From Callorhinchus milii (Eukaryota), in assembly GCF_018977255.1 (NCBI RefSeq), contig NW_024705404.1, forward strand, positions 1-47,901: 47,901 bases of DNA, given 5' to 3'. Made by a program: the position numbers and the translations under genes. Numbering within the stretch: the stretch's first letter is position 1; each line of letters opens with the position of its first letter. Below, piece after piece: positions 17,300 through 47,200 of this stretch. Below the pieces are notes generated by a model that ran no database searches, was not told the DNA's origin, and worked only from the letters and a program-made list of their open reading frames with translations.

Positions 17300-17580
17300 C
17301 TCACCGCACAGAAGTAAGTGGCGGTGTCCGACACCCGCACGCCTTGGATTGATAGACTGCTTCTTTTTATCTTTTACAACCTTCGAAGCCCTTATGCTGT
17401 CCTTCACGTTAACCTCACTTGTTCCCAAAACCCAAAACAGGATAGAGCCGTTTCCATACTGTTTGTACCATTGAAAGAAAGAGTTGGACGCAGTGGCGGT
17501 GCACTCCACAGATACGTTTCCTTTTTCATTCTCTGACAAGGCCCGAGTTCTCTGTGACACCTCGTTTTCAGCCAAAACAC
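17300..17580 (-). pseudogene. TCR V pseudogene exon (+1 frameshift in FR3)
   Basis: AENEVSQ...VEC...FQWYKQ in one frame and QGVRVSDTATYFCAV in another, due to an extra A in the AAAAAGAAGC run near 17360-17368. RSS CACAGTG-23bp-ACAAAAACA (17299-17261). Possible leader 18109-18043 contains an in-frame TGA. Confidence 0.82.
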
Positions 17581-17599
17581 CTGAAAAGATCATAAATAA

Positions 17600-17844
17600 A
17601 TGAAGATGAATCACAAAGTCAGCGAGAGAAAGCCCGGGAGAGACAGACAGACAGAGAAATTGGGCAAAAATATAACGTAAAGTGTAGTGACTTTCTGTTT
17701 TGTGGGAAAGACTGAGAGATTGACTAAGAGAGAGACAGAGGGAGAAAATACATAAGAACATGTATGGACCTTGCTTTTGTGGGAGAGACTCAGAGAGAGA
17801 GAGGGATAGGTAGAGAGCGAGGGAGAAAGGGGGAGAGAGGGGAC

Positions 17845-17875
<31 letters not shown>

Positions 17876-18040
17876 AGAGAGACGAAGATAGACGGAGATA
17901 GAGATGGAGGCGAGAGGGAGAGAGACATCGATACAGAGAGAGACTCATGGTGACTCAGAGAGAAAGACTGCGAGCGAAACGAAGAGACTGAGATAGGCTT
18001 AGAGACACTGAGAGAAAGACAGAGAAGGTGAGAGACTCAT
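17600..18040. repeat. GA-rich microsatellite / low-complexity tract
   Basis: (GA)n and GAGG runs inside the putative V intron. Confidence 0.85.
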
Positions 18041-20169: not shown

Positions 20170-21010
20170 AACAGCCCTTCCCATCCTCAACCGAACCCAG
20201 TCCCTTCACATTCTCACTCATATCTAGCCCCTATCCCTCGTCACTCAAATCCATCCCCTCCCCATCCACAGCAGCAATGAGCCCCTTCCCAGCTTCACAC
20301 TGAACCGGATTCTCCCAATCCTCGCACGATTCCCTTACCTCCCCATCGTCACCCACAAAAATGCCCTCACCACCCAGAACCACTCTCAGCACCTCGCATT
20401 CAGCAACCGCTCCCAGTCACTCCTCATCCTCACACACACCCAGCCCCTCCCCATCCTCACACACTGCAAGCAGCTCGCCATGCTGACACACACCCAGCCC
20501 TTCCCCATCCTCACACACACCCAGCACCTCCCCATCCTCACCCACTGGTAGCACTTCCCCATGCTGACACACACCCAGACCTTCCCCATCCTCACACACA
20601 GCCAGTCACTCCCCATCCGCACACACACAGCACCTCCCCAAAACTCAAACACTGCCCCGACTCATCCTCACCAAACACACAGCCCATCCTCTTTCACAAC
20701 AGCTCCCAGCCCCTCCCCATCCTCACACACTGTGAGCATCTCCCCATTCTTACACACACCCAGCCCTTCCCCATCCAAACACACACCCAGTCACTCTCCA
20801 TCCGCACACACACACACAGCACCTCCCCAAAACTCAAACACTGCCCATACTCATCCTCACCAAACACACAGCCCATCCCCTTTCACAACCGCTCCCAGCC
20901 CCTCCCCATCCTCTCACACACACCCAGCCCCTCCCCGTCCACGCATTCAACCAGCCCGTCCCCAATGTCACAAATACACAGCCACTCCCCATCCTCACCC
21001 ACACCAAGCT
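20170..21010. repeat. Diverged C/A-rich tandem repeat (units like cacacacccagcccttccccatcct)
   Basis: Repeated ~30-bp units plus a larger internal duplication. Source of the repetitive ORFs (VCVRMG...). Confidence 0.85.
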
Positions 21011-21024
21011 CCTCCTTGTTATAG

Positions 21025-21444
21025 TGACCAGCTGAGCACGAACACCATAATCACCAGATCAGCAGTAAAACCATGTTGATGATCTCGGCACTAACACTAT
21101 GTTGACCAGCTCAGCAATAGCAACATGGTGACCAGCTCAGCACTGTCACTATGCTGACCAGCTCAGCATTAACACCATGGTGACCAGCTCAGCATTAACA
21201 CCATGGTGACCAGCTCAGCACTAACACCATGGTGACCAGCTCAGCACTAACACCATGGTAATCAATTCAGCACTAACACCATGGTGACCCGCTCACTCTG
21301 AACACCATGGTGACCAGCTCAGCAGTAACACCATGGTAACCAGCTCAGCACTAACACCATGGTGACCAGCTCAGCACTCACGCCATGGTGACCAGCTCAG
21401 CACTGACCCCATGGTCACCAGCTCACCACTAACACCATGGTGAC
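21025..21444. repeat. 26-bp minisatellite (TGACCAGCTCAGCACTAACACCATGG), ~16 copies
   Basis: Head-to-tail copies without spacers, degenerate toward the left edge. Confidence 0.92.
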
Positions 21445-24951: not shown

Positions 24952-25274
24952 GGAGTCCTGTAGCTCAGTGGTTAGAGCACTCGCTTTGCAAGTGAGAGAC
25001 CTGAGTTCAATTCCAGGCAGAGGGCGAACCATGGGCAAGTTTCCTTACTCCACACGCCTAATAATAATCCCTCCAAAAAAAAAACAATAATTAAATTGGT
25101 CATTTTCACTCTACGACTGTTTGTGGGACATTGCTGTGCGCAATTGGCTGCCGCGTTCGCCCACAAATATACAGTCAATTCACTTTACAGTGTGTTCTGT
25201 GAAGCGCATTGGGACGTCCTCCGGACGTGAAAAGCGCTATATCAAATGCAAGGATTATTATTATTATTATTATT
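24952..25274 (+). mobile_element. tRNA-derived SINE, full length
   Basis: GGAGTCCTGTAGCTCAGTGGTTAGAGC...GTTCAATTCC head, core, tail GGGACGTCCTCCGGACGTGAAAAGCGCTAT similar to the L2 3' end, (ATT)n end. Confidence 0.9.
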
Positions 25275-26145: not shown

Positions 26146-26452
26146 TGTGTGATGGTACAGTAATGTTTGACCATGTCAGGTAGAGCCACGGGGAACACAA
26201 ATAGAGTGGATCTCTTCCTGCCCATGTACAGATTTGACTTTAAACTTTGCGTTGCAAATTCAGCAATGAATACATCCCCCTCAGAATCATGTATCCTTGT
26301 GTACAGAGGAGGTTCGCTTGGATACTGACGGTACCAGAATATTAAACCATTGGTGGAATCAGCAGAGAAGGTGCAGCTCAGGGTTACAGTCTGTACTTCA
26401 GTAACAGACATTTCAACCTCTGATGGATCAACACTGACTCCATCTCCTGTCC
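26146..26452 (-). pseudogene. Divergent TCR V exon, open frame but probably non-functional
   Basis: TVTLSC...IFWYRQYP...DMVKHYCTIT (degenerate D-x-x-x-Y-Y-C). RSS CACAGTG-23bp-GCATAAATC has a weak nonamer. The only leader-like remnant (~27108-27173) has ATGTCAG|TGGAG in place of a GT donor. Confidence 0.6.
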
Positions 26453-27357
26453 CTATAGCCAGAGCAAACATGTTTATCAGTGTCATACAAAGCCCGGAGG
26501 TAAACCCACTAATTGTTTCAAGGGTTAGGGAGAAAGATTTAACATCATGCACAATAAACGTGAATGTAACATCCCAAAGGAATTAACAGCGAAAATGTGC
26601 TGCCCTGTTAACCACAAAGCACATAGCAACTCAAATTTGCAATCAGAATATGTGAAGAGCTTTAAGTTATACTCTATACCGACAAACATATAAGGTCTGA
26701 TGTTCCTTCATCTCCAGGATTTATTTTCTATGCTGGGTTGTCAAAAAATCAGCCTTGTGCTCCAATGTAGGTCAAGTAATACCCATTGATTATCTTGACT
26801 TCATCTACTGCAAGTAACATAATAGCAATGATTGCATTTGATGGAGTGATTGTACATTTTAATCTGGAGCGCACACCTGTGTCCTTCAAAAACAGGCGTG
26901 GATCAAGAAACAAAACTATTATTTGCCAATTAGTTTTGTAGTTGTCATTACCCCAGATAATAATTTGACAGTCGACCAGCAAACGCGTTCTCACGTACTG
27001 CAAGAAAAACAGAGGCGCGAGTATGGAGTAAGGAAACTTGACCAACTTTTCGCACTGCCTGGGATTCGAACCCATGTCCTCTCACTAACGATTAAGGTAC
27101 ACGTCTCCACTGACATTAAAATATCACTTCCAAAAACATTTATCACAATCTTCTCTCTGTTGGTGAAGAACATCTCAACTATACAGTAAGAAAAGTATCA
27201 CACATTTTAGCTGACTTGACAAACCTCAACAAGATGTGAGCTATGGTGGCATTTGGCAGAAGGTTTGTTACATTCTCTGTCGCTAACTGTACTGTTTCCC
27301 AGCTTTGACTTTGATGAGGGTTATTGTACGAGGCTTCCTATGATGTGTATCACTGTG

Positions 27358-27659
27358 GTGCAGACTGAGTGCACAGTGATACATAGCGGAGTCTGTCAGC
27401 CGCAGGTCGGCGATGGTTAAAACGCTGATTTTCTTGGCAGTGTCAAGAGAAACAGAAATATGATCTCCAGTGGGGTTTCCTCCCTCTCCTGAGGGTTTTC
27501 TGTGGAGCAGGTATTTCAGTCCCTCGCCAGGGGACTGACGGTACCAGGAGACGCTGAAATCCTGTCCGCAGTATCCTGAATATTGGCAATGTAAATTTAT
27601 CCTCTCACCAGCAAAAGCAGTTTGTTCAGGCGGTGACTGGGAAACTGTATAATTGGATC
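27358..27659 (-). CDS. Leaderless supporting TCR-delta V of NAR-TCR cassette 2
   Basis: Phase-1 acceptor CAG|GA. SNYTVSQSPPEQTAFAGERINLHCQYSGYCGQDFSVSWYRQ...DSAMYHCALSLH, with an extra CDR1 Cys. RSS CACAGTG-23bp-ACAATAACC (27357-27319). In phase with the upstream NAR J donor. No leader seen upstream, although N gap 28645-28940 is unread. Confidence 0.88.
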
Positions 27660-27689
27660 CTGCGGGACGCAAATTACAGTTTACTTAGA

Positions 27690-28230
27690 GTCATGGAATC
27701 ATTGAATCTTTCAGCACAGGAAGAGGCCATTCAGCCCATTGTGTCTGAGAAAAGAGCTTTTAAAAATGCCAACCAATATGATCCCGCTCTCTCGCAATGA
27801 ACACATAGAACTTTATAATTCCTTTTGATGCATCCAGCCAATTCCATACTGAAATTATCTTTCGAATCTGTTTCCACCACCCGTTGAGGCAGCACATTGC
27901 ATTCAATAGGAATTTTCAGTGAAAATAAATCCTTCTGCTCTCCCCTCTTGTTCTTTTACCAATTATCATACATTTGGGTTCATTGGTGACTGAACCACTT
28001 GCCAGTGGAAGCATGTTATCCTTCTCTGCTCTATCAAAAACACTCACAGCTCTGAACACTTCATCTAAATCTCCGCTAAACCTTCGATGCTCTCAGGAGA
28101 AGATGGCCAGATTCTTCATACAAACTAATTCCCTCTGTCTTGGTATCATTTTGCTAAATGGCCTTTGCACCCTGTCCAAGGCCTTCACGCATGTGTCCGT
28201 GAAAGGTACAAAGACAATTGTAGGGATTAA
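27690..28230 (-). mobile_element. CR1 LINE 3' fragment in the J-to-supporting-V intron
   Basis: Typical CR1 3' end on the minus strand (...ATGGGCTGAATGGCCTCTTCCTGTGCTG...GATTCCATGACTC) preceded by RT C-terminal-like sequence. Boundaries approximate. Confidence 0.75.
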
Positions 28231-29489
28231 TGTTACATCAACAGTGGAAGGAGCAATGGGATGTATTAAAATAGGCATTTCTTGTAGCTGAGCCATGTTT
28301 TATTGCAGACGCAAACCTTATTTCTATGACTGTATACCATTGATATGATCTCTCATAAATGAACCGTTTAATTGAGGTTTGTTTCTCTAATCTTATATTT
28401 GTTTGCTGTTGCGGTTTGTCGACATTGAGGCTTTGGGTGTCTGCGATCATGGGAATGTTTAGCAGAGAATCAGGTGTCAGGTTGTACCGTTAACTTCAGC
28501 GCGTTTACAGTTGAAGCAAATGGAAAGCTTCTCTGCTGTAAATATCGTTACTTTAACATCGCTGCTGAGGAGATTTATTCTCTGGTTTGTTGCCAATATC
28601 AGTTTCCCTCTCAGTCTGTGAGCTGCTCATTGCAGTTTCACTTGNNNNNNNNNNNNNNNNNNNNNNNNNNNNNNNNNNNNNNNNNNNNNNNNNNNNNNNN
28701 NNNNNNNNNNNNNNNNNNNNNNNNNNNNNNNNNNNNNNNNNNNNNNNNNNNNNNNNNNNNNNNNNNNNNNNNNNNNNNNNNNNNNNNNNNNNNNNNNNNN
28801 NNNNNNNNNNNNNNNNNNNNNNNNNNNNNNNNNNNNNNNNNNNNNNNNNNNNNNNNNNNNNNNNNNNNNNNNNNNNNNNNNNNNNNNNNNNNNNNNNNNN
28901 NNNNNNNNNNNNNNNNNNNNNNNNNNNNNNNNNNNNNNNNATGTCTTTCTTTATGTCTTTCTTTAGGACTTTCTTTCTTTCGTTCTGTCCCTCTTTCTTT
29001 CTTTCTGTCCCTCTTTCTGTCTAATTCTTTTTTCATTCTTTCTTCAAATGTCATGGCTTACATTTTCGCAACATGCAGTGTTTCTGCAGGCTTGCATATT
29101 GACTTGCTTGTTGGTGTAGAATAAAGCAGAATTACCTGGGAACTCTCAGCGAATATGGAGAGAGGAAAGTGTGTTAACGTTTCAGGTCGATGAACTTGAT
29201 GCAGAAATTTAGACCCCACTTTTCGGGAGAACAGAGGAGGTTATTGATGATAATACATCATTTTACCCAGCTCAAGTACAAATTCATTACACAATTAATA
29301 TCAATTTACTCTGGTCATGGTCCTTTGGAACTACTATGCAATCCAAATCAGTGACTTTCAAAACATGGAAATAAAAGTTGGTCATTTGAGAAACAAACCT
29401 TGAAGTAGTATTCGGTTAGAATAATGTTTTTNGACAAACTCACGTGAATAAACTTTTATGTTAGTTCGTTAGAAATATTTCGCACTTAC

Positions 29490-29545
29490 TTTTCGTTACA
29501 GTTACTTTGGTTCCTGAACCATCTTCTGTATATTCCTTATAATAA
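29490..29545 (-). other. NAR-TCR J segment, cassette 2 (YYKEYTEDGSGTKVTVTK)
   Basis: AGTTTTTGC (29584-29576), 23-bp spacer, TACTGTG (29552-29546), 56-nt open segment, phase-1 donor A|GTAAGT. Confidence 0.92.
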
Positions 29546-29925
29546 CACAGTAACACAGCTCTGACTCTACAAGTTGCAAAAACTGTTCCATCGAATCATG
29601 ATTTAATTCTGGCACCAAAACAAGCAAATGCAGACAAATTGTTAATAAATTCCTATACTTATACCACAGTCCCATTTGTATAATATTCGTTTGTCCAAAT
29701 CATGCTTATTTTCAGTAAGTTTTCCACATAAACACAGTCAAAGCGCAAAGACCGAAGAACATTTTCTGCAAATAATTCTACAAAATATGTGGAAATAATT
29801 AATATTGAAAGCTAACTTTCGATACTTTCTGGAGCACAAAACAGGACAATGTTAGCAATGATCACGCCTCATGTATTTCCGTGAAAATTAGCAGTGCGGT
29901 AATTGTGCTGATGTTTTCCAATGTG

Positions 29926-29940
29926 GGTTCCCAAGCCAAG
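29926..29940 (-). other. NAR-TCR D segment, cassette 2 (CTTGGCTTGGGAACC), 12/12 RSS
   Basis: TGTTTTTGT-12bp-CAACGTG (29968-29941; variant heptamer that keeps CAC), 15-nt D, CACATTG-12bp-ACAATTACC (29925-29898). Open in three frames (LGLGT / LAWE / WLGN). Confidence 0.88.
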
Positions 29941-30330
29941 CACGTTGTTTTATGTCAACACAAAAACACCGGTTCGCAAAACAATTCAAATGAGATCTGC
30001 CATTTACAAATGGTCAATTAATCACATAACGTGTAAAATTCTTTTGAATATTTTCTGAGTAAATTTGCATGCCGTCTGTCCCTTGCAATAATTTATAAGG
30101 TATATGAATCCAAACAACGTAGTAACTTCAGATTGATACACACTCACTTTTCCTAAGTATTCATAACTGTCAGTCGCTGCTTAAAGGAAGTATTCTTAAA
30201 CATAGCTGCACATCACACACGAATGAGGAACATGCACTGAACTCATCGGCAATTTCACATTATCTGTATTTTTCCTGTGAGTTGGTGACGGGGCTTTTTG
30301 TACTGTTGGAAGCCCAGATACGGCATTGTG

Positions 30331-31047
30331 GTATCCCAGTAATATCGAGCTCTACAGTAATAATCAGCGCTGCCTTCAACTTGCAAGTCATTGATTTCCA
30401 GAGAAGAGGACCACGATCCCTTGTCTGTCTTCACAACAAACCGTCCTTCACGAGGAATGGGCTTCCAATTTCTTTCATTTGGAAACCGCCTATAAAACTC
30501 CATACTTTTGAATTTGCTTTCAAAGCTTGCTGAGAAGACGCAGTTGATGGTTAGAGACTCGCATTCTTCTCTTCTAATAGAGGATGGCGTCTGTGTTACT
30601 GAGGCGCTGAAAACATCTGAGAAATTATGCACAATATTACATCAGTTTAACAGATTTTCAACGTTGACCACTGCTATTACAATTTCAATGCAACTTTTGG
30701 CTTTATCTCCCTTGATATCAGTTGACATAATATACTCAGGATTATGTAATATCATTATTATATTAATTAATTAATATGATTATAATATATAATGAAACAA
30801 AAGTAAAATAATTGCCTGTCGCGTTTCGCCCATCAAAATACAAAGTTATTTCAGTACAAAATTATTATGTGAAGCGATTTGAGACGTCCCATCCACATCA
30901 TAACGCTATACATCAATTACAAGGATAATTTGTATAGTGTAGTTACAGTACTGATGACATTCACTGGTGCTGTGAAGTGCTGTGTTATGGAAACAAACAC
31001 TTACATTGTAAGAAGAGGAAGGAGATGGAGACACAGAGGAGAGACAT
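30331..31047 (-). CDS. NAR-TCR V (IgNAR-like V domain), cassette 2
   Basis: Leader 31047-31005 (MSLLCVSISFLFLQ). V exon 30616-30331: ASVTQTPSSIRREECESLTINC...GSADYYCRARYYWDT. 61 residues between the canonical Cys and an extra FR1 Cys. RSS CACAATG-22bp-ACAAAAAGC (30330-30293). Confidence 0.92.
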
Positions 31048-31715
31048 TCTCTCACCGCTGGGAGACACCGTCAGCCCCGGACACCTCAGAGTGACTGTGA
31101 GTAACACAGGACTGTTCTGTAAGACTGTTGGAGACTTGGTTTATTTGTGATGAAGAGCGAATCACATCATGGCTGGTGTCAGCGGCTTTGAGGCGTGGGC
31201 GGTGTGTGGTTTGGGGGTGGGAAATCCTATTTGATGAAAGAGATTGACGAACAGTGCGCGAGAGCAGGCGGCAGTAGAGGGCGATGTGGTGTTCACTGTT
31301 GACCACTCAATTAGGATTAAATTCACAATTGACGGGAAGCCGAAGGAAGGAAATTTAAACTGACACGGGAAGTGGGACAAAGGTCTTGTGATGCGGAGAG
31401 CGGCTTTAGTGAATGTTAGGAAAGACCGATAAAGAAGATACTAATGCACCTTTGACTTGGAGAAGGATCTGTTGCAGTGACCAGCAGTGACCAGAGTGGG
31501 GAAACTGGTTAAAGCAGCAGGGATTTAGCGTGACATGGATGATGGTGGGTGTGAAGGAGGAAGGAGAATTTGGGGTAACGGAGTATAAGGTTAGGGCAAT
31601 AATAAGAGCCTTAAGTGGTAGGGAACTAATTGATGGGCGGATGCGAGGGGACATAGAGGGGATAGAGGAGGCAGCTATCAGAATGGTCACTTTACTGTAT
31701 ATCCTGTGAACCTGT

Positions 31716-37525: not shown

Positions 37526-38287
37526 AGTACATCAGGAGAGAGAGCACAGAGATACACAGCGCTGTCAGACACCAGCAGCTCAAAGATGGATAATCTGGTG
37601 GCAGATTGGGAAGTGAGAAGCTGAGAAGAGAATCGAATTCCAATTCCTTCTCCTTTTCTTTCCTGATTGTCATATGAATCCCTTCGTAGTATGAACTCTG
37701 GCTGTTTGCCTGGGGAATGTCGGTACCAGAACAGGTAGTAATATCTTTCAGTCGTGGAATAGCTACATTCAAACGTCACCGTTTCTCTTTCTGTCTTCAG
37801 CATCAGTGCATCCTTCTGACTGACAGAATCCCCACCACAGAGATCTGTAATAGACATGGAAGATCACGACAATGCATTATTCACTATTTGCCTGAATTAT
37901 TTTACACCACCTTGCTACATCATCCTGCTGACGCGATAGGCGCTATACGTTTTGTTACTAATCAAATAATAATCATCCATACAATTTATGTAACACATTG
38001 TCACGTCTATGAGTCTTCTTGCGTTAATTGCTGTGTATTTTCAAGGGCGAAACGCATCCGTCAATTGCACACAACAGTGTTTCTCAAACAGTCGTCCATT
38101 GAATGAACGCATTATTTTTATGGGATTATTAACGACGGGTTCAACCGTGATTAAATAGCGACTGGGTTCCAGCTGACTACTGGGCAAAAAGACGCGTTCC
38201 TGTGTCAGCAGCATCACTGAATCAGCTCAACACGGCCTCACCTGACATGAAGGTTCCCAGCACCAGACAGACAGCAAACAGCCTCAT
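37526..38287 (-). CDS. TCR alpha/delta V segment, apparently intact (MRLFAVCL-leader family)
   Basis: Leader 38287-38242. V exon 37844-37526 (GDSVSQKD...FEC...LFWYRH...DSAVYLCALSPDVL). RSS CACAGTG-23bp-ACAATAACT (37525-37487). Confidence 0.9.
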
Positions 38288-44296: not shown

Positions 44297-47200
44297 AACA
44301 ACAAGATTCCATTTATAAAGCGCCTTTCACGTCAGGAGGATTTCCCAAGGCGCTGCACAGTTGGGTCATGACCCGAGCAGGGGGGAAATGGTCAGGGTGA
44401 GGGAAGGGAGGGAGCGAGGAGGGGGAACTGGTCAGGGTAAGGGGAGGGAAGGGAGGGAGCGAGGAGGGGAAGAGAGTCGAGAGGGGAGCTGAAGGCACGG
44501 TCAAAGAGAAAGATTTTGAGACCGGCCTTGAAGGAGGAAAGGGAGGAAGCAAGGCGAAGGCACTGGAGGATGGAGTTCCAGAGCCTCGGGGCTGAGAGGC
44601 TGAAGGCCCGACCACCGATGGTAGGGAGGTTGGGGCGGGGGACGTGGAGCAGACCGGAGCCAGAGGAACGGAGGGTACGGGCAGGTAGGTAGGGGGATAG
44701 TAGGTTGGAGAGGTAGGAGGGAGCAAGGCCGTGAATGGCCTTGTAGGTGAGGATGAGGATCTTGAAATCAATCCTCTGGGGGATGGGGAGCCAGTGGAGG
44801 CGAGCGAGGGTGGGAGTGATGTGGTCCCGAAGCCTGGTGCGGGACAGTACACGAGCTGCAGAGTTCTGAATGACCTGCAGCTTGTGGAGGGAGGTGGCGG
44901 GAAGGCCGGCGAGGAGAGAGTTCCCATAGTCCAGCCTTGAGGTGACAAAGGCGTGGACCAGGGTTTCAGCAGCGTGAGGGGTGAGGTAGTGCCGTAGTCT
45001 GGCGATGTTCCGGAGGTGATGGAAGGCGGTGCCAGTTGTGGTGCGGATGTGAGGGAGAAAGGACAGCTCAGGGTCGAACAAAACGCCGAGGTTCCTGACT
45101 GGCTTTGAGAGGTGGAGAGTGCAGCCTTGGATGCTGATGGTGTCAGCGCCTGAGGTGCGGAGGCGCTGACGTGAGCCAATCAGGAGGGCCTCGGTTTTTC
45201 GCACGTTGAGCTGAAGAAAGTTGTCTCTCGTCCAGGACTCGATGTCGGACAGGCAGCTGTCAGGACATCGGTGGTCGTGGAGTTGAGAGTAGAGGAGGAA
45301 AGGTAGAGTTGGGTGTCATCCGCATACATGTGGAAGTTAACTCCATGTCTGCGGATGATGTCACCGAGGGGGAGCATATAGAGGGTGAAGAGGAGGGGAC
45401 CGAGGACAGAGCCCTGAGGGACACCACATGAGACAGTACGGGGGGTGGAGGAGAAGCCATTCGTTGAGACAAAGTGAAGACGGTGAGAAAGGTACGACCT
45501 AAACCATTCAAGGACAGTGCCTTGAAGGTTGAGGTGGGAGGACAAGCGGTGGAGTAGGATAGCGTGGTCGACCGTATCGAATGCTGCCGATAGGTCGAGG
45601 AGGACGAGGAGACAGAGGGAGCCCTGGTCACAGATGGTCAGGATATCATTGGTGACCTTGACCAGGGCAGTTTCTGTGCTATGGCAGCACGGAAACCTGA
45701 CTGAAGGGGTTCAAAAAGAGAATGGGTGGAAAGGAAAGAGCGCAGTTGGGAGGCGACAACTCTTTCCAAGACCTTGGAGAGAAAGGGGAGGTTGGAGATG
45801 GGCCGGTAGCTTGATAGCTGCGACGCATCAAGGGAGGGTTTTTTCAGGGTGGGCGTGATGATGGCAGTTTTTAATGGAATGGGGACAGAGCCAGAGGAGA
45901 GGGACAGGTTGATGATGTCAGTGATGTGTGGGGCAAGAAAGTGGAGCTGGGAGATAAGGAGTGGAGTGGGGATGGGGTCAAGGGAGCAGGTGGTTGGTTT
46001 TAGGGATAGGATGAGTTCAGTGACAGAGGGTGGGGAAACGGGTACGAAGGTGTGTAGGGGAGGATAGGTAGGAGTCGGAGTGTGGGAGGGAAGGGGTGGG
46101 TGGTGGGTGGAAGTTGGAGGGGAAGTGACCGCGGAGCGGATTCCCTTGATCTTGGATTCAAGGAAATCCAGCATCTCCTCGCAGTGAAGGTTGGAGGAGA
46201 TGACCTGCGCGGGGTGGCGGGGGGGACGGAGGAGTCGGGTTGTGGTGGAAAACAGTAGCCTGGGGTTGTTCTTCGCCTCCAGGATTATCCTGGAGTAGAA
46301 GGACGACTTGGCCGAGGCTAGAGTGGAGCGGTAAATTTTGAGGAGGTCCAGCCAGATTTGTCGGTGGACCGTTAGGCCAGATTTGACACAGGTGCGTTCA
46401 GCAGCCCGCACCTGGCTTTTCAGTGAGCGGAGGTGGGTGGTGTACCAGGGGGAGGAGCGGGAGTAGGAGACAGTGCGGGAAGTGATGGGGGCAAGAGTAT
46501 CGAGTGTGGAGGAGAGGGTATTGTGGAGGAGGGAGAGAGGAGAAGAGGGGTCGGTGAGGGTTGAAGGCCAGAGGGAGAGGAGTTCAGAGGACTCCAAGGC
46601 ATCGGTTAGGGATTGTGGGGGTAACTTCTTCCAAGGGCGGTAGAAGATGGTGGTGGGTCTGGTGGAGGTGGGGAGGGGGGTGGAGGTGGTGAAGGAGATG
46701 AAGTAGTGGTCAGAGATGGCCTTGTCGGTAATAGTGACATCCGAGACACTGAGGCCCCGGGTGATCACCAAATCGAGTGGGTGGCCGTGACTGTGAGTGG
46801 GGGAGTTTATGTGTAAGGAGAGGTTGAGTGAGGAGAGCAGGGAAGAGAAGTCTGTGGAGATGGAGCAGGAGGGGGTGAAGTGTAGGTTAAAGTCGCCCAG
46901 GATGATGAGGCGATCGGAGCAGAGGCAAAGAGATGTGAGGAGTGTTGAAATGTCAGAGATGAAGGTGGGAGAGGTTTTAGGGGGCCGGTAGAGGAGGAGG
47001 ATTTTAAGGGAGAGGAATGAGGGGTGGGAGAGGGTGAGGTGCTCAAAGGAGGGGAAAGAGCCAGTGGAGTAGGGGGATAGGGCAAGTGGTGTCCTTGAGA
47101 TAAGGGCAACACCACCGCCACGGCGGTTGGGGCGGGGGATGTGGTGGGAGGTGTAGCCGGGTGGTGTGGCCTCCGTGAGGGGGAAGGTGTCGCCTGGGGT

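Follow-up and report, generated by a model that had tools for sequence, protein, structure and literature searches.

Within the window, by which we mean the whole 47,901-nt stretch of Callorhinchus milii DNA that was analysed (contig NW_024705404.1), positions 27319-31047 hold a leader, a NAR-type V, a D and a J followed by a second V of the TCR-delta type, a unit that we refer to as cassette B. The preliminary description had proposed this L-V-D-J then V order with every element intact, and a base-by-base check located each one on the minus strand, intact and at or within these coordinates. The features of cassette B, together with a paralogous L-V-D-J unit (cassette A), are as follows:

31048-31586, minus strand: region on the promoter side (upstream) of the NAR leader, in collinear alignment with cassette A
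31005-31047, minus strand: NAR leader exon, MSLLCVSISFLFLQ plus 1 base, donor AAT/GTAAGT, phase 1
30617-31004, minus strand: leader intron, 388 nt
30331-30616, minus strand: NAR-type V exon, 286 nt, acceptor ctcag/AT, C-terminal end ...YYCRARYYWD
30293-30330, minus strand: NAR V RSS, CACAATG, 22-nt spacer, ACAAAAAGC
29941-29968, minus strand: D 5' RSS, TGTTTTTGT, 12-nt spacer, CAACGTG
29926-29940, minus strand: D segment, 15 nt, CTTGGCTTGGGAACC, all three frames open
29898-29925, minus strand: D 3' RSS, CACATTG, 12-nt spacer, ACAATTACC
29546-29584, minus strand: J RSS, AGTTTTTGC, 23-nt spacer, TACTGTG
29490-29545, minus strand: J segment, 56 nt, YYKEYTEDGSGTKVTVTK plus A, donor GTAAGT at 29489, phase 1
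27660-29489, minus strand: J-to-V intron, 1830 nt as scaffolded, containing a gap, one N, a microsatellite and a conserved block
27358-27659, minus strand: supporting TCR-delta-type V exon, 302 nt, acceptor cccgcag/GA, ends YHCALSLH
27319-27357, minus strand: supporting V RSS, CACAGTG, 23-nt spacer, ACAATAACC, a perfect 23-spacer RSS ending at 27319
907-2450, minus strand: paralogous cassette A (L-V-D-J), with leader 2450-2408, V 2025-1743, D 1352-1337 and J 953-907

Cassette B sits inside a conventional V array, as had been claimed: it is flanked on the same strand by at least nine V segments of the conventional TCR type, each bearing a 23-RSS, and conventional TCR V segments are found at 26148 below it and at 37528 above it. 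D-delta, J-delta and C-delta do not occur within the 47,901-nt window, nor does any constant exon that would identify the locus directly. Cassette A is collinear with cassette B (900-2987 aligned with 29483-31586), and its J-to-V intron is interrupted by a gap at 369-847 and continues beyond the window. A pseudogene V fragment lies near the cassettes at 7386-7541. The expectation that automated annotation mishandles NAR-TCR units was borne out by the Ensembl/UniProt model A0A4W3HC63 (C. milii, 'Secreted protein'). This model represents a V of the cassette, with a 57-residue stretch at 100% identity, but its N-terminus is foreign and its end has been spliced wrongly; among the neighbouring gene models, several fuse different V exons into chimeras.

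The NAR leader has a hydrophobic core score of 2.54 and a donor agreeing with the consensus at 7 of 8 positions. The NAR V exon, which is matched by Pfam V-set and retains the canonical Cys pair, falls in our tree into a clade with VNAR (IgNAR) and elasmobranch NAR-TCR Vs (SH-aLRT 99), and VNARs make up the top 7 of the 60 solved-structure matches listed (E=4e-15 to 2e-13). We drew the defining NAR-TCR features from PMC1845163 and reviews; in PMC1845163, the marks of a NAR-TCR V include a Cys within its a-b loop and lack of the canonical Trp of WYRK. Both extra Cys residues named in the preliminary description, in REECESL of the NAR V and YSGYCGQ of the supporting V, are present. The former is the a-b-loop Cys (RREE[C]ESLTINC), which was seen in all eight NAR-TCR Vs examined, in contrast to a Gly at that site in two IgNAR Vs. 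Similarly, the FR2 motif of the NAR V is EFYRR, without Trp, whereas IgNAR Vs have WYRK, and the FR2 Trp is missing from NAR-TCR Vs wherever it was scored.

Recombination signals in cassette B run in the order V with a 22-nt spacer, D with 12-nt spacers on both sides and J with a 23-nt spacer, and this arrangement, including the 22-nt spacer of the NAR V, recurs in cassette A, Carcharodon and Heterodontus. Such a 12/23 layout resembles that of Ig heavy chains and renders the D obligatory. The arrangement exceeds chance: the window has two pairs of back-to-back 12-RSSs separated by 8-25 nt, one precisely at each NAR cassette, vs. none in 200 dinucleotide shuffles, and 23-type RSS matches in the window number 17 vs. 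1.96 expected. An Ig-like signal layout, coupled with a V closest to VNAR domains, might point to an IgNAR-type Ig cluster with a J that splices to Ig constant exons. We regard this reading as almost certainly wrong in view of the following: 1) cassette B contains a single D and not three; 2) its V carries the NAR-TCR marks, with the FR2 Trp absent and the a-b Cys present; 3) the sequence downstream of J has no open frame of the Ig C type, with none of the open stretches of at least 40 aa in the J-to-V intron (longest 83 aa) matching an Ig domain; 4) the next in-phase exon is a TCR-type V; and 5) IgNAR and IgW are reported absent from C. milii (PMC3964593).

Three of the five heptamers in cassette B show one departure from CACAGTG, and the heptamer on the 5' side of the D shows two. 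These imperfect heptamers (CACAATG, CAACGTG, CACATTG and TACTGTG), together with pseudogene Vs nearby such as the fragment described above, could signify that cassette B is an inactive relic which has preserved its frames and lost rearrangement or expression. We find this distinctly unlikely, given that the critical CAC is kept in every heptamer, that the nonamers agree at 7-8 of 9 positions, that all exons are open and that the splice sites are canonical. Moreover, the 213 nt ending at the leader donor (promoter and leader) and the J segments are 90.6% and, over 44 nt, 91% identical between the two cassettes, vs. 67-71% for the intervals separating V, D and J and for the leader intron (79% for the V exon), a pattern that points toward constraint. 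The untrimmed conceptual join of L, V, D, J and V in cassette B gives an open frame of 702 nt (234 codons); we dismissed the in-frame untrimmed V-D-J join as a coincidence, because the corresponding join of cassette A is out of frame and because junctions are trimmed in vivo.

The supporting V is likewise matched by Pfam V-set (3e-15), is placed by the tree among the supporting Vs of C. milii and elasmobranchs (support 92), separately from the NAR Vs, and has a rearrangement signal of its own, CACAGTG-23-ACAATAACC. Its CDR1 Cys lies in QYSGY[C]GQDFSVS, and such a Cys was present in 10 of 11 supporting Vs vs. none of the 9 conventional Vs of the window. The exon starts four codons ahead of VSQSP of FR1, with no end of a signal peptide. 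With respect to the claim that this V is leaderless, we looked for a leader-like phase-1 mini-exon in the sequenced bases of the J-to-V intron (27660-28644 and 28941-29489) and found none; the same scan recovered the leaders of 8 other Vs in the window, with leader introns of ~90-540 nt. The claim thus stands for the 985 sequenced nt between the V and the 296-N gap. In each of the elasmobranch introns, the scan gave a single weak and non-conserved leader candidate, over 1.2 kb away from the V, which we judged to be due to chance.

As the gap (28645-28940) is unreadable, one may ask if it conceals a leader, in which case this V would be a TCR delta V of the ordinary kind, or one with two uses, and its supporting role would not be obligate. 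A C. milii gene model (P0006) does place a conventional-type leader, MRLFAVCLV, on a supporting-type V without the CDR1 Cys, but this model looks like an annotation artefact because the intron upstream of the acceptor is read through. A leader in the gap would require an intron of at least 986 nt, well apart from the ~90-540 nt mentioned above; in addition, the acceptor phase of the supporting V fits the J donor, the four codons preceding VSQSP lack a signal-peptide end, and gene models of two sharks join orthologous supporting Vs directly to the NAR J. We therefore deem a hidden leader very unlikely.

The splice phases of J and supporting V match, as had been proposed. In silico, the donor AAAA/GTAAGT and the acceptor CGCAG/GA are both in phase 1 and yield TK-R-SN; since A plus GA encodes Arg, the junction is exactly TKVTVTK-R-SNYTVSQSPPEQ. 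The J-to-V junction recurs in protein records obtained independently, as TKVTVTK-R-KSYTVSQSPPEQ in UniParc UPI0004576186 and as TVTA-D-SSSLVS in the gene models of Carcharodon and Heterodontus. We did not accept the UniParc record (P0001) as proof of expression and used its J-to-V junction alone as corroboration, because Ensembl-type models here (P0017) 'splice' V to J without recombination and the V-J joint of P0001 may accordingly be an artefact.

The assembly gap within the J-to-V intron is 296 N long, its length being an estimate, and is situated 545 nt past the J donor and 985 nt short of the V acceptor. As the gap is intronic, no reading frame depends on it; a single N at 29432 is intronic as well. 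Because the gap separates J from the supporting V, their pairing depends on a scaffold join; that the two are linked and that the gap harbours no exon is presumed by analogy, and physical continuity of the two flanks has only indirect support. It is conceivable that the scaffold join is wrong, with the leader/NAR V/D/J contig (28941 up) and the supporting-V contig (28644 down) coming from different cassettes or places, in which event the architecture would persist and this particular pairing would not. Tandem paralogues in the window are 72-91% identical, both cassettes are gapped in the J-to-V intron, and the gap in cassette B adjoins a (TCTT)n microsatellite (28944-29044), a spot prone to mis-joins. 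Nevertheless, both gap flanks are in the expected order and orientation, cassette A separately displays a J, a gap and the same conserved intron block (28336-28644 in cassette B, 88.7% identical over 310 nt), and in Carcharodon and Heterodontus, whose loci are free of gaps, J and supporting V are contiguous at distances of 2.7 and 5.5 kb. We consider a wrong join unlikely.

The conserved block was tested as a dispersed repeat and against sharks, and proved to be neither a repeat nor shared. Because its identity between the cassettes exceeds that of the leader intron, the V-D and D-J intervals and even the V exon, we speculate, while judging it rather doubtful, that the J-to-V intron may hold a conserved cis-acting element beside the long microsatellite. 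If so, the element might coordinate accessibility of both rearrangements or the splicing of J to V over a long range; a duller explanation would be a recent gene conversion.

The nurse shark NAR-TcR, reportedly described by Criscitiello, Saltis and Flajnik in PNAS in 2006, is one of the closest points of reference. That work is cited in PMC1845163, PMC5931798 and PMC3149040, and the receptor resembles cassette B in the following: 1) two V domains, each with its own V(D)J rearrangement; 2) a leader-bearing, IgNAR-related N-terminal V with the a-b-loop Cys and without the WYRK Trp; and 3) a supporting delta V that carries a Cys in CDR1. The shark V is leaderless and lies in the TCR delta locus; that of cassette B has no leader in its 985 sequenced upstream nt and probably lies in the corresponding locus. 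Cassette B differs in belonging to a holocephalan, with a two-V sequence ~45% identical to elasmobranch two-V products. In the gap-free Heterodontus and Carcharodon loci, the layout, RSS spacers and phase-1 J-to-V junction are as in cassette B, with spacing of ~390 and 380-405 nt. NAR-TcRV and associated TcR-delta V genes of C. milii itself were reported in 2007 (Venkatesh et al., PMC1845163) and 2014 (PMC3964593); they concern the same species, family and hallmarks and, in the text consulted, give peptide alignments and presence, whereas cassette B gives the full germline layout of one unit, from leader, V, RSSs, D and J to the intron and supporting V. IgNAR clusters share with cassette B a homologous V (support 99), Ig-like RSS logic and a J with a 23-RSS; in contrast, they have three Ds, constant exons of their own, a retained FR2 Trp and Gly at the a-b site. 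Marsupial and monotreme TCR mu likewise has three domains per chain, and its antibody-like distal V, carried on a supporting V, is believed to contact antigen unpaired (PMC3457774). TCR mu is considered a product of convergence; the distal V is VH-related and not NAR-related, the supporting V is germline-joined in marsupials, and the locus is separate from TCR alpha/delta. VH-delta/TAILV segments are Ig-type Vs located within the TCR alpha/delta locus or close to it (PMC12227049) which, unlike NAR-TCR, form ordinary two-domain delta chains with no dedicated D/J and no second V.

The anatomy of cassette B, read directly from the DNA, is that of an IgNAR-related V with a leader, then one D, one J and a phase-1 donor. 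By analogy with the nurse shark, we surmise that RAG would join the NAR V, D and J in a developing T cell of the gamma/delta lineage and that, independently, the supporting V would be recombined with a D-delta and a J-delta lying downstream of it. Transcription would begin at the NAR leader promoter, with splicing of the leader to the NAR VDJ and of the NAR J to the supporting VDJ and on to C-delta, and the product would be a three-domain delta chain. The NAR domain may be held on the supporting V through the peptide link and a proposed disulfide between the a-b-loop Cys and the CDR1 Cys. An AlphaFold2 model of the Carcharodon two-V product (8-row alignment) had a mean pLDDT of 64 and a pTM of 0.44, and its linker and a-b loop both scored under 50.

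Taken together, cassette B is very probably a NAR-TCR germline unit, its anatomy coming from sequence and its presumed rearrangement and expression from the nurse shark. It shows the sequence-testable NAR-TCR hallmarks of PMC1845163, the leader scan of the supporting V covering the sequenced bases, and the view that this is the known NAR-TCR architecture of cartilaginous fish agrees with these hallmarks and with the same layout in Carcharodon and Heterodontus. It is a germline copy of the already described shark/chimaera NAR-TCR unit and ordinary for the locus; its value is for annotation alone, and existing knowledge of NAR-TCR is unchanged. Public gene models of the cassette B region are visibly wrong, and the delimited holocephalan unit offers an annotation reference for D, J, five RSSs, splice phases and the supporting V, in a system that is the presumed origin of the single-domain VNAR scaffold in biotechnology. 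Chimaeras and sharks alike have conserved this layout, with its spacer lengths and its splice phase.

Read directly from the sequence, cassette B, the NAR-TCR unit at 27319-31047 on the minus strand, has matched splice phases throughout and ends in a TCR-delta-type V (the supporting V) with its own 23-RSS. Its elements, all on the minus strand, are:

31047-31005 (-), leader exon, 43 nt: MSLLCVSISFLFLQ plus one base; donor AAT/GTAAGT, phase 1
Leader intron of the NAR V (-), 388 nt, between the leader donor and the acceptor ctcag/AT
30616-30331 (-), NAR V exon, 286 nt: acceptor ctcag/AT; (Y)VFSASVTQTPSSIRREECESLTINC...MEFYRRF...DYYCRARYYWD
NAR V RSS (-), directly adjoining the NAR V exon: CACAATG-22-ACAAAAAGC
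29940-29926 (-), D segment, 15 nt, 390 nt beyond the NAR V
D flanking RSSs (-), on both sides of 29940-29926: TGTTTTTGT-12-CAACGTG and CACATTG-12-ACAATTACC
NAR J RSS (-), 380 nt beyond the D: AGTTTTTGC-23-TACTGTG
29545-29490 (-), NAR J, 56 nt: encodes YYKEYTEDGSGTKVTVTK plus A; donor /GTAAGT, phase 1
J-to-V intron (-), 1830 bases as scaffolded, from the NAR J donor to the supporting V acceptor
27659-27358 (-), supporting V exon, 302 nt: acceptor cccgcag/GA; (R)SNYTVSQSPPEQ...LHCQYSGYCGQDFSVSWYRQ...YHCALSLH
Supporting V RSS (-), adjoining the supporting V and ending at 27319: CACAGTG-23-ACAATAACC

The in-frame junction between NAR J and supporting V that had been claimed for this unit is exact, with A and GA joining to encode Arg. 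The untrimmed conceptual join of the five coding pieces gives an open frame of 234 codons; as the equivalent join in the paralogous cassette A is out of frame, we take this openness to be a coincidence. An ATGCAAAT octamer lies at 30064-30071 (-), in the interval from the NAR V RSS to the D, and may mean nothing, with about 1.5 matches expected by chance in the window.

Both V exons encode V-set domains, and the closest solved structures to the NAR V are VNARs (E=4e-15). In the tree, one clade (support 99) unites the NAR V with the V of cassette A, two IgNAR Vs and the NAR-TCR Vs of two sharks. The supporting V groups with C. milii relatives and the supporting Vs of the same two sharks (support 92); the window's conventional Vs fall outside that group. 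The proposed NAR-TCR architecture is borne out by marks taken from the literature (PMC1845163): a Cys in the a-b loop is present in 8/8 NAR-TCR Vs vs. Gly at that place in IgNAR Vs, the FR2 motif of the NAR V is FYRR rather than WYRK, and a CDR1 Cys is found in 10/11 supporting Vs vs. 0/9 conventional Vs.

The RSS arrangement exceeds chance. A scan of the window at one fixed threshold gave 17 matches of the 23-type, where 1.96 would be expected, and 6 of the 12-type, where 0.98 would be. Two 12-RSSs placed back to back at a distance of 8-25 nt are seen at just two places, the two NAR cassettes, and in none of 200 dinucleotide shuffles. Since the RSSs of NAR V and NAR J alike have long spacers, the 12/23 logic renders the D obligatory. 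The NAR V RSS spacer is 22 nt, not 23, in all four germline copies examined (2 chimaera, 2 shark):

Window 30293-30330
Window 1705-1742
Carcharodon carcharias locus (L001), from 6484
Second shark locus (L002), from 6467

The NAR-TCR loci of Heterodontus and Carcharodon share the order and spacers of cassette B (V RSS with 22, 12-D-12, 23-J), nearly match it in their V-to-D and D-to-J distances, and splice J to V at TVTA-D-SSSLVS, likewise in phase 1. UniParc UPI0004576186, which carries TKVTVTK-R-KSYTVSQSPPEQ, is 66% identical across the full conceptual product. At L001 11424-11792, Carcharodon has a germline-joined NAR VDJ ahead of a supporting V, and the matching leader starts with ATA, not ATG; the C. 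milii models P0018 and P0019 have one identical CDR3 in common, which suggests germline-joined NAR-TCR copies in this species too.

The N gap at 28645-28940 is intronic by its position, being 545 nt away from the J donor on the upstream side and 985 nt from the acceptor of the supporting V on the downstream side; no reading frame crosses it, and it is the exon borders that determine the splice phases. Upstream it is bordered by a degenerate (TCTT)n microsatellite (28944-29044), and microsatellites are a frequent source of assembly breaks. Three comparisons indirectly support continuity of cassette B across the gap: the flanks have the expected strand and order; cassette A runs from J through its own gap (369-847) into an intron block (310 nt) whose match sits just below the cassette B gap; and in gap-free loci NAR J and supporting V are contiguous, 2.7 kb apart in Carcharodon carcharias and 5.5 kb in Heterodontus francisci.

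The supporting V has no detectable leader. A scan for ATG-initiated hydrophobic mini-exons ending in a GT donor found a leader for 8 of the window's Vs, both NAR Vs among them, and the leader introns of these measure about 90-540 nt. Upstream of the supporting V it gave no candidate, in phase 1 or any other, either in the 985 nt next to the exon or in the 549 nt that separate gap and NAR J. On the coding strand of the J-to-V intron the longest open stretches reach at most 83 aa, with no match to an Ig domain. It is unlikely that a leader is hidden within the gap, as its intron would need to be about twice the longest other leader intron in the window.

Cassette A (907-2450, minus strand) is a second leader-V-D-J unit whose RSSs are laid out as in cassette B; the supporting V that belongs to it falls beyond the window start, and its gap ends at a point homologous to that of cassette B. 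The non-coding block below the gaps (28336-28644 vs. 47-354) is 88.7% identical between cassettes, compared with 67-71% for the leader intron, V-D and D-J intervals and 79% for the V exon. It has no further copy in the window and is absent from the two shark loci; it could be a regulatory element or the outcome of gene conversion.

That automated annotation mishandles such units, as the preliminary description had held, is evident from public records. The C. milii protein A0A4W3HC63 ('Secreted protein') matches 30605-30435 with 100% identity over its residues 27-83. The window does not contain its first 26 residues, and the model ends in a mis-splice beyond the RSS; the window is thus almost certainly from Callorhinchus milii, and the NAR V gene is mis-modelled. 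The supporting V has no identical public gene model, and models of its best relatives, paralogues 82-93% identical, read through acceptor and RSS. Several other C. milii UniProt models (P0009, P0010, P0013, P0014, P0015, P0017) fuse conventional-V halves to supporting or NAR V halves, or splice V straight to J; these are artefacts of a kind that annotation typically produces in V arrays.

Other features of the window are:

9081-9431 (-), conventional V, overlooked by the RSS scan
7386-7541 (-), truncated V fragment with a good RSS
17300-17944 (-), doubtful V, its end reading LLLCGE, set in AG-rich simple sequence
6980-7049 (Val-GAC), 8149-8220 (Gly-CCC), 9469-9540 (Ala-CGC) and 24955-25025 (Ala-TGC), tRNA-like sequences (ARAGORN) within the V array, which may represent tRNA genes or the heads of tRNA-derived SINEs
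20412-21444, two adjoining minisatellites (units of 27 and 26 nt) with strong C over G skew
4333-4430, 45-nt C-rich repeat, with its reverse complement at 44374-44469

The NAR-TCR was reportedly described in the nurse shark in 2006. Its presence in C. milii was reported in 2007 and 2014 (PMC1845163, PMC3964593), and PMC3149040 places it inside the TCR delta locus, as does a drawing in PMC12227049. Reading this unit as a NAR-TCR cassette was a correct account of an established system, one already on record for the species; mild novelty attaches only to the annotation-grade detail and to the intron block with its unusual conservation. By analogy with the nurse-shark system (PMC5931798, PMC3457774, PMC12227049), each V of cassette B would undergo its own independent RAG rearrangement, transcription would start at the NAR leader, and splicing would run from leader to NAR VDJ, to supporting VDJ, to C-delta. 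The product would be a three-domain delta chain, with a putative disulfide joining the two extra Cys of NAR V and supporting V, in which the distal V would bind antigen unpaired.
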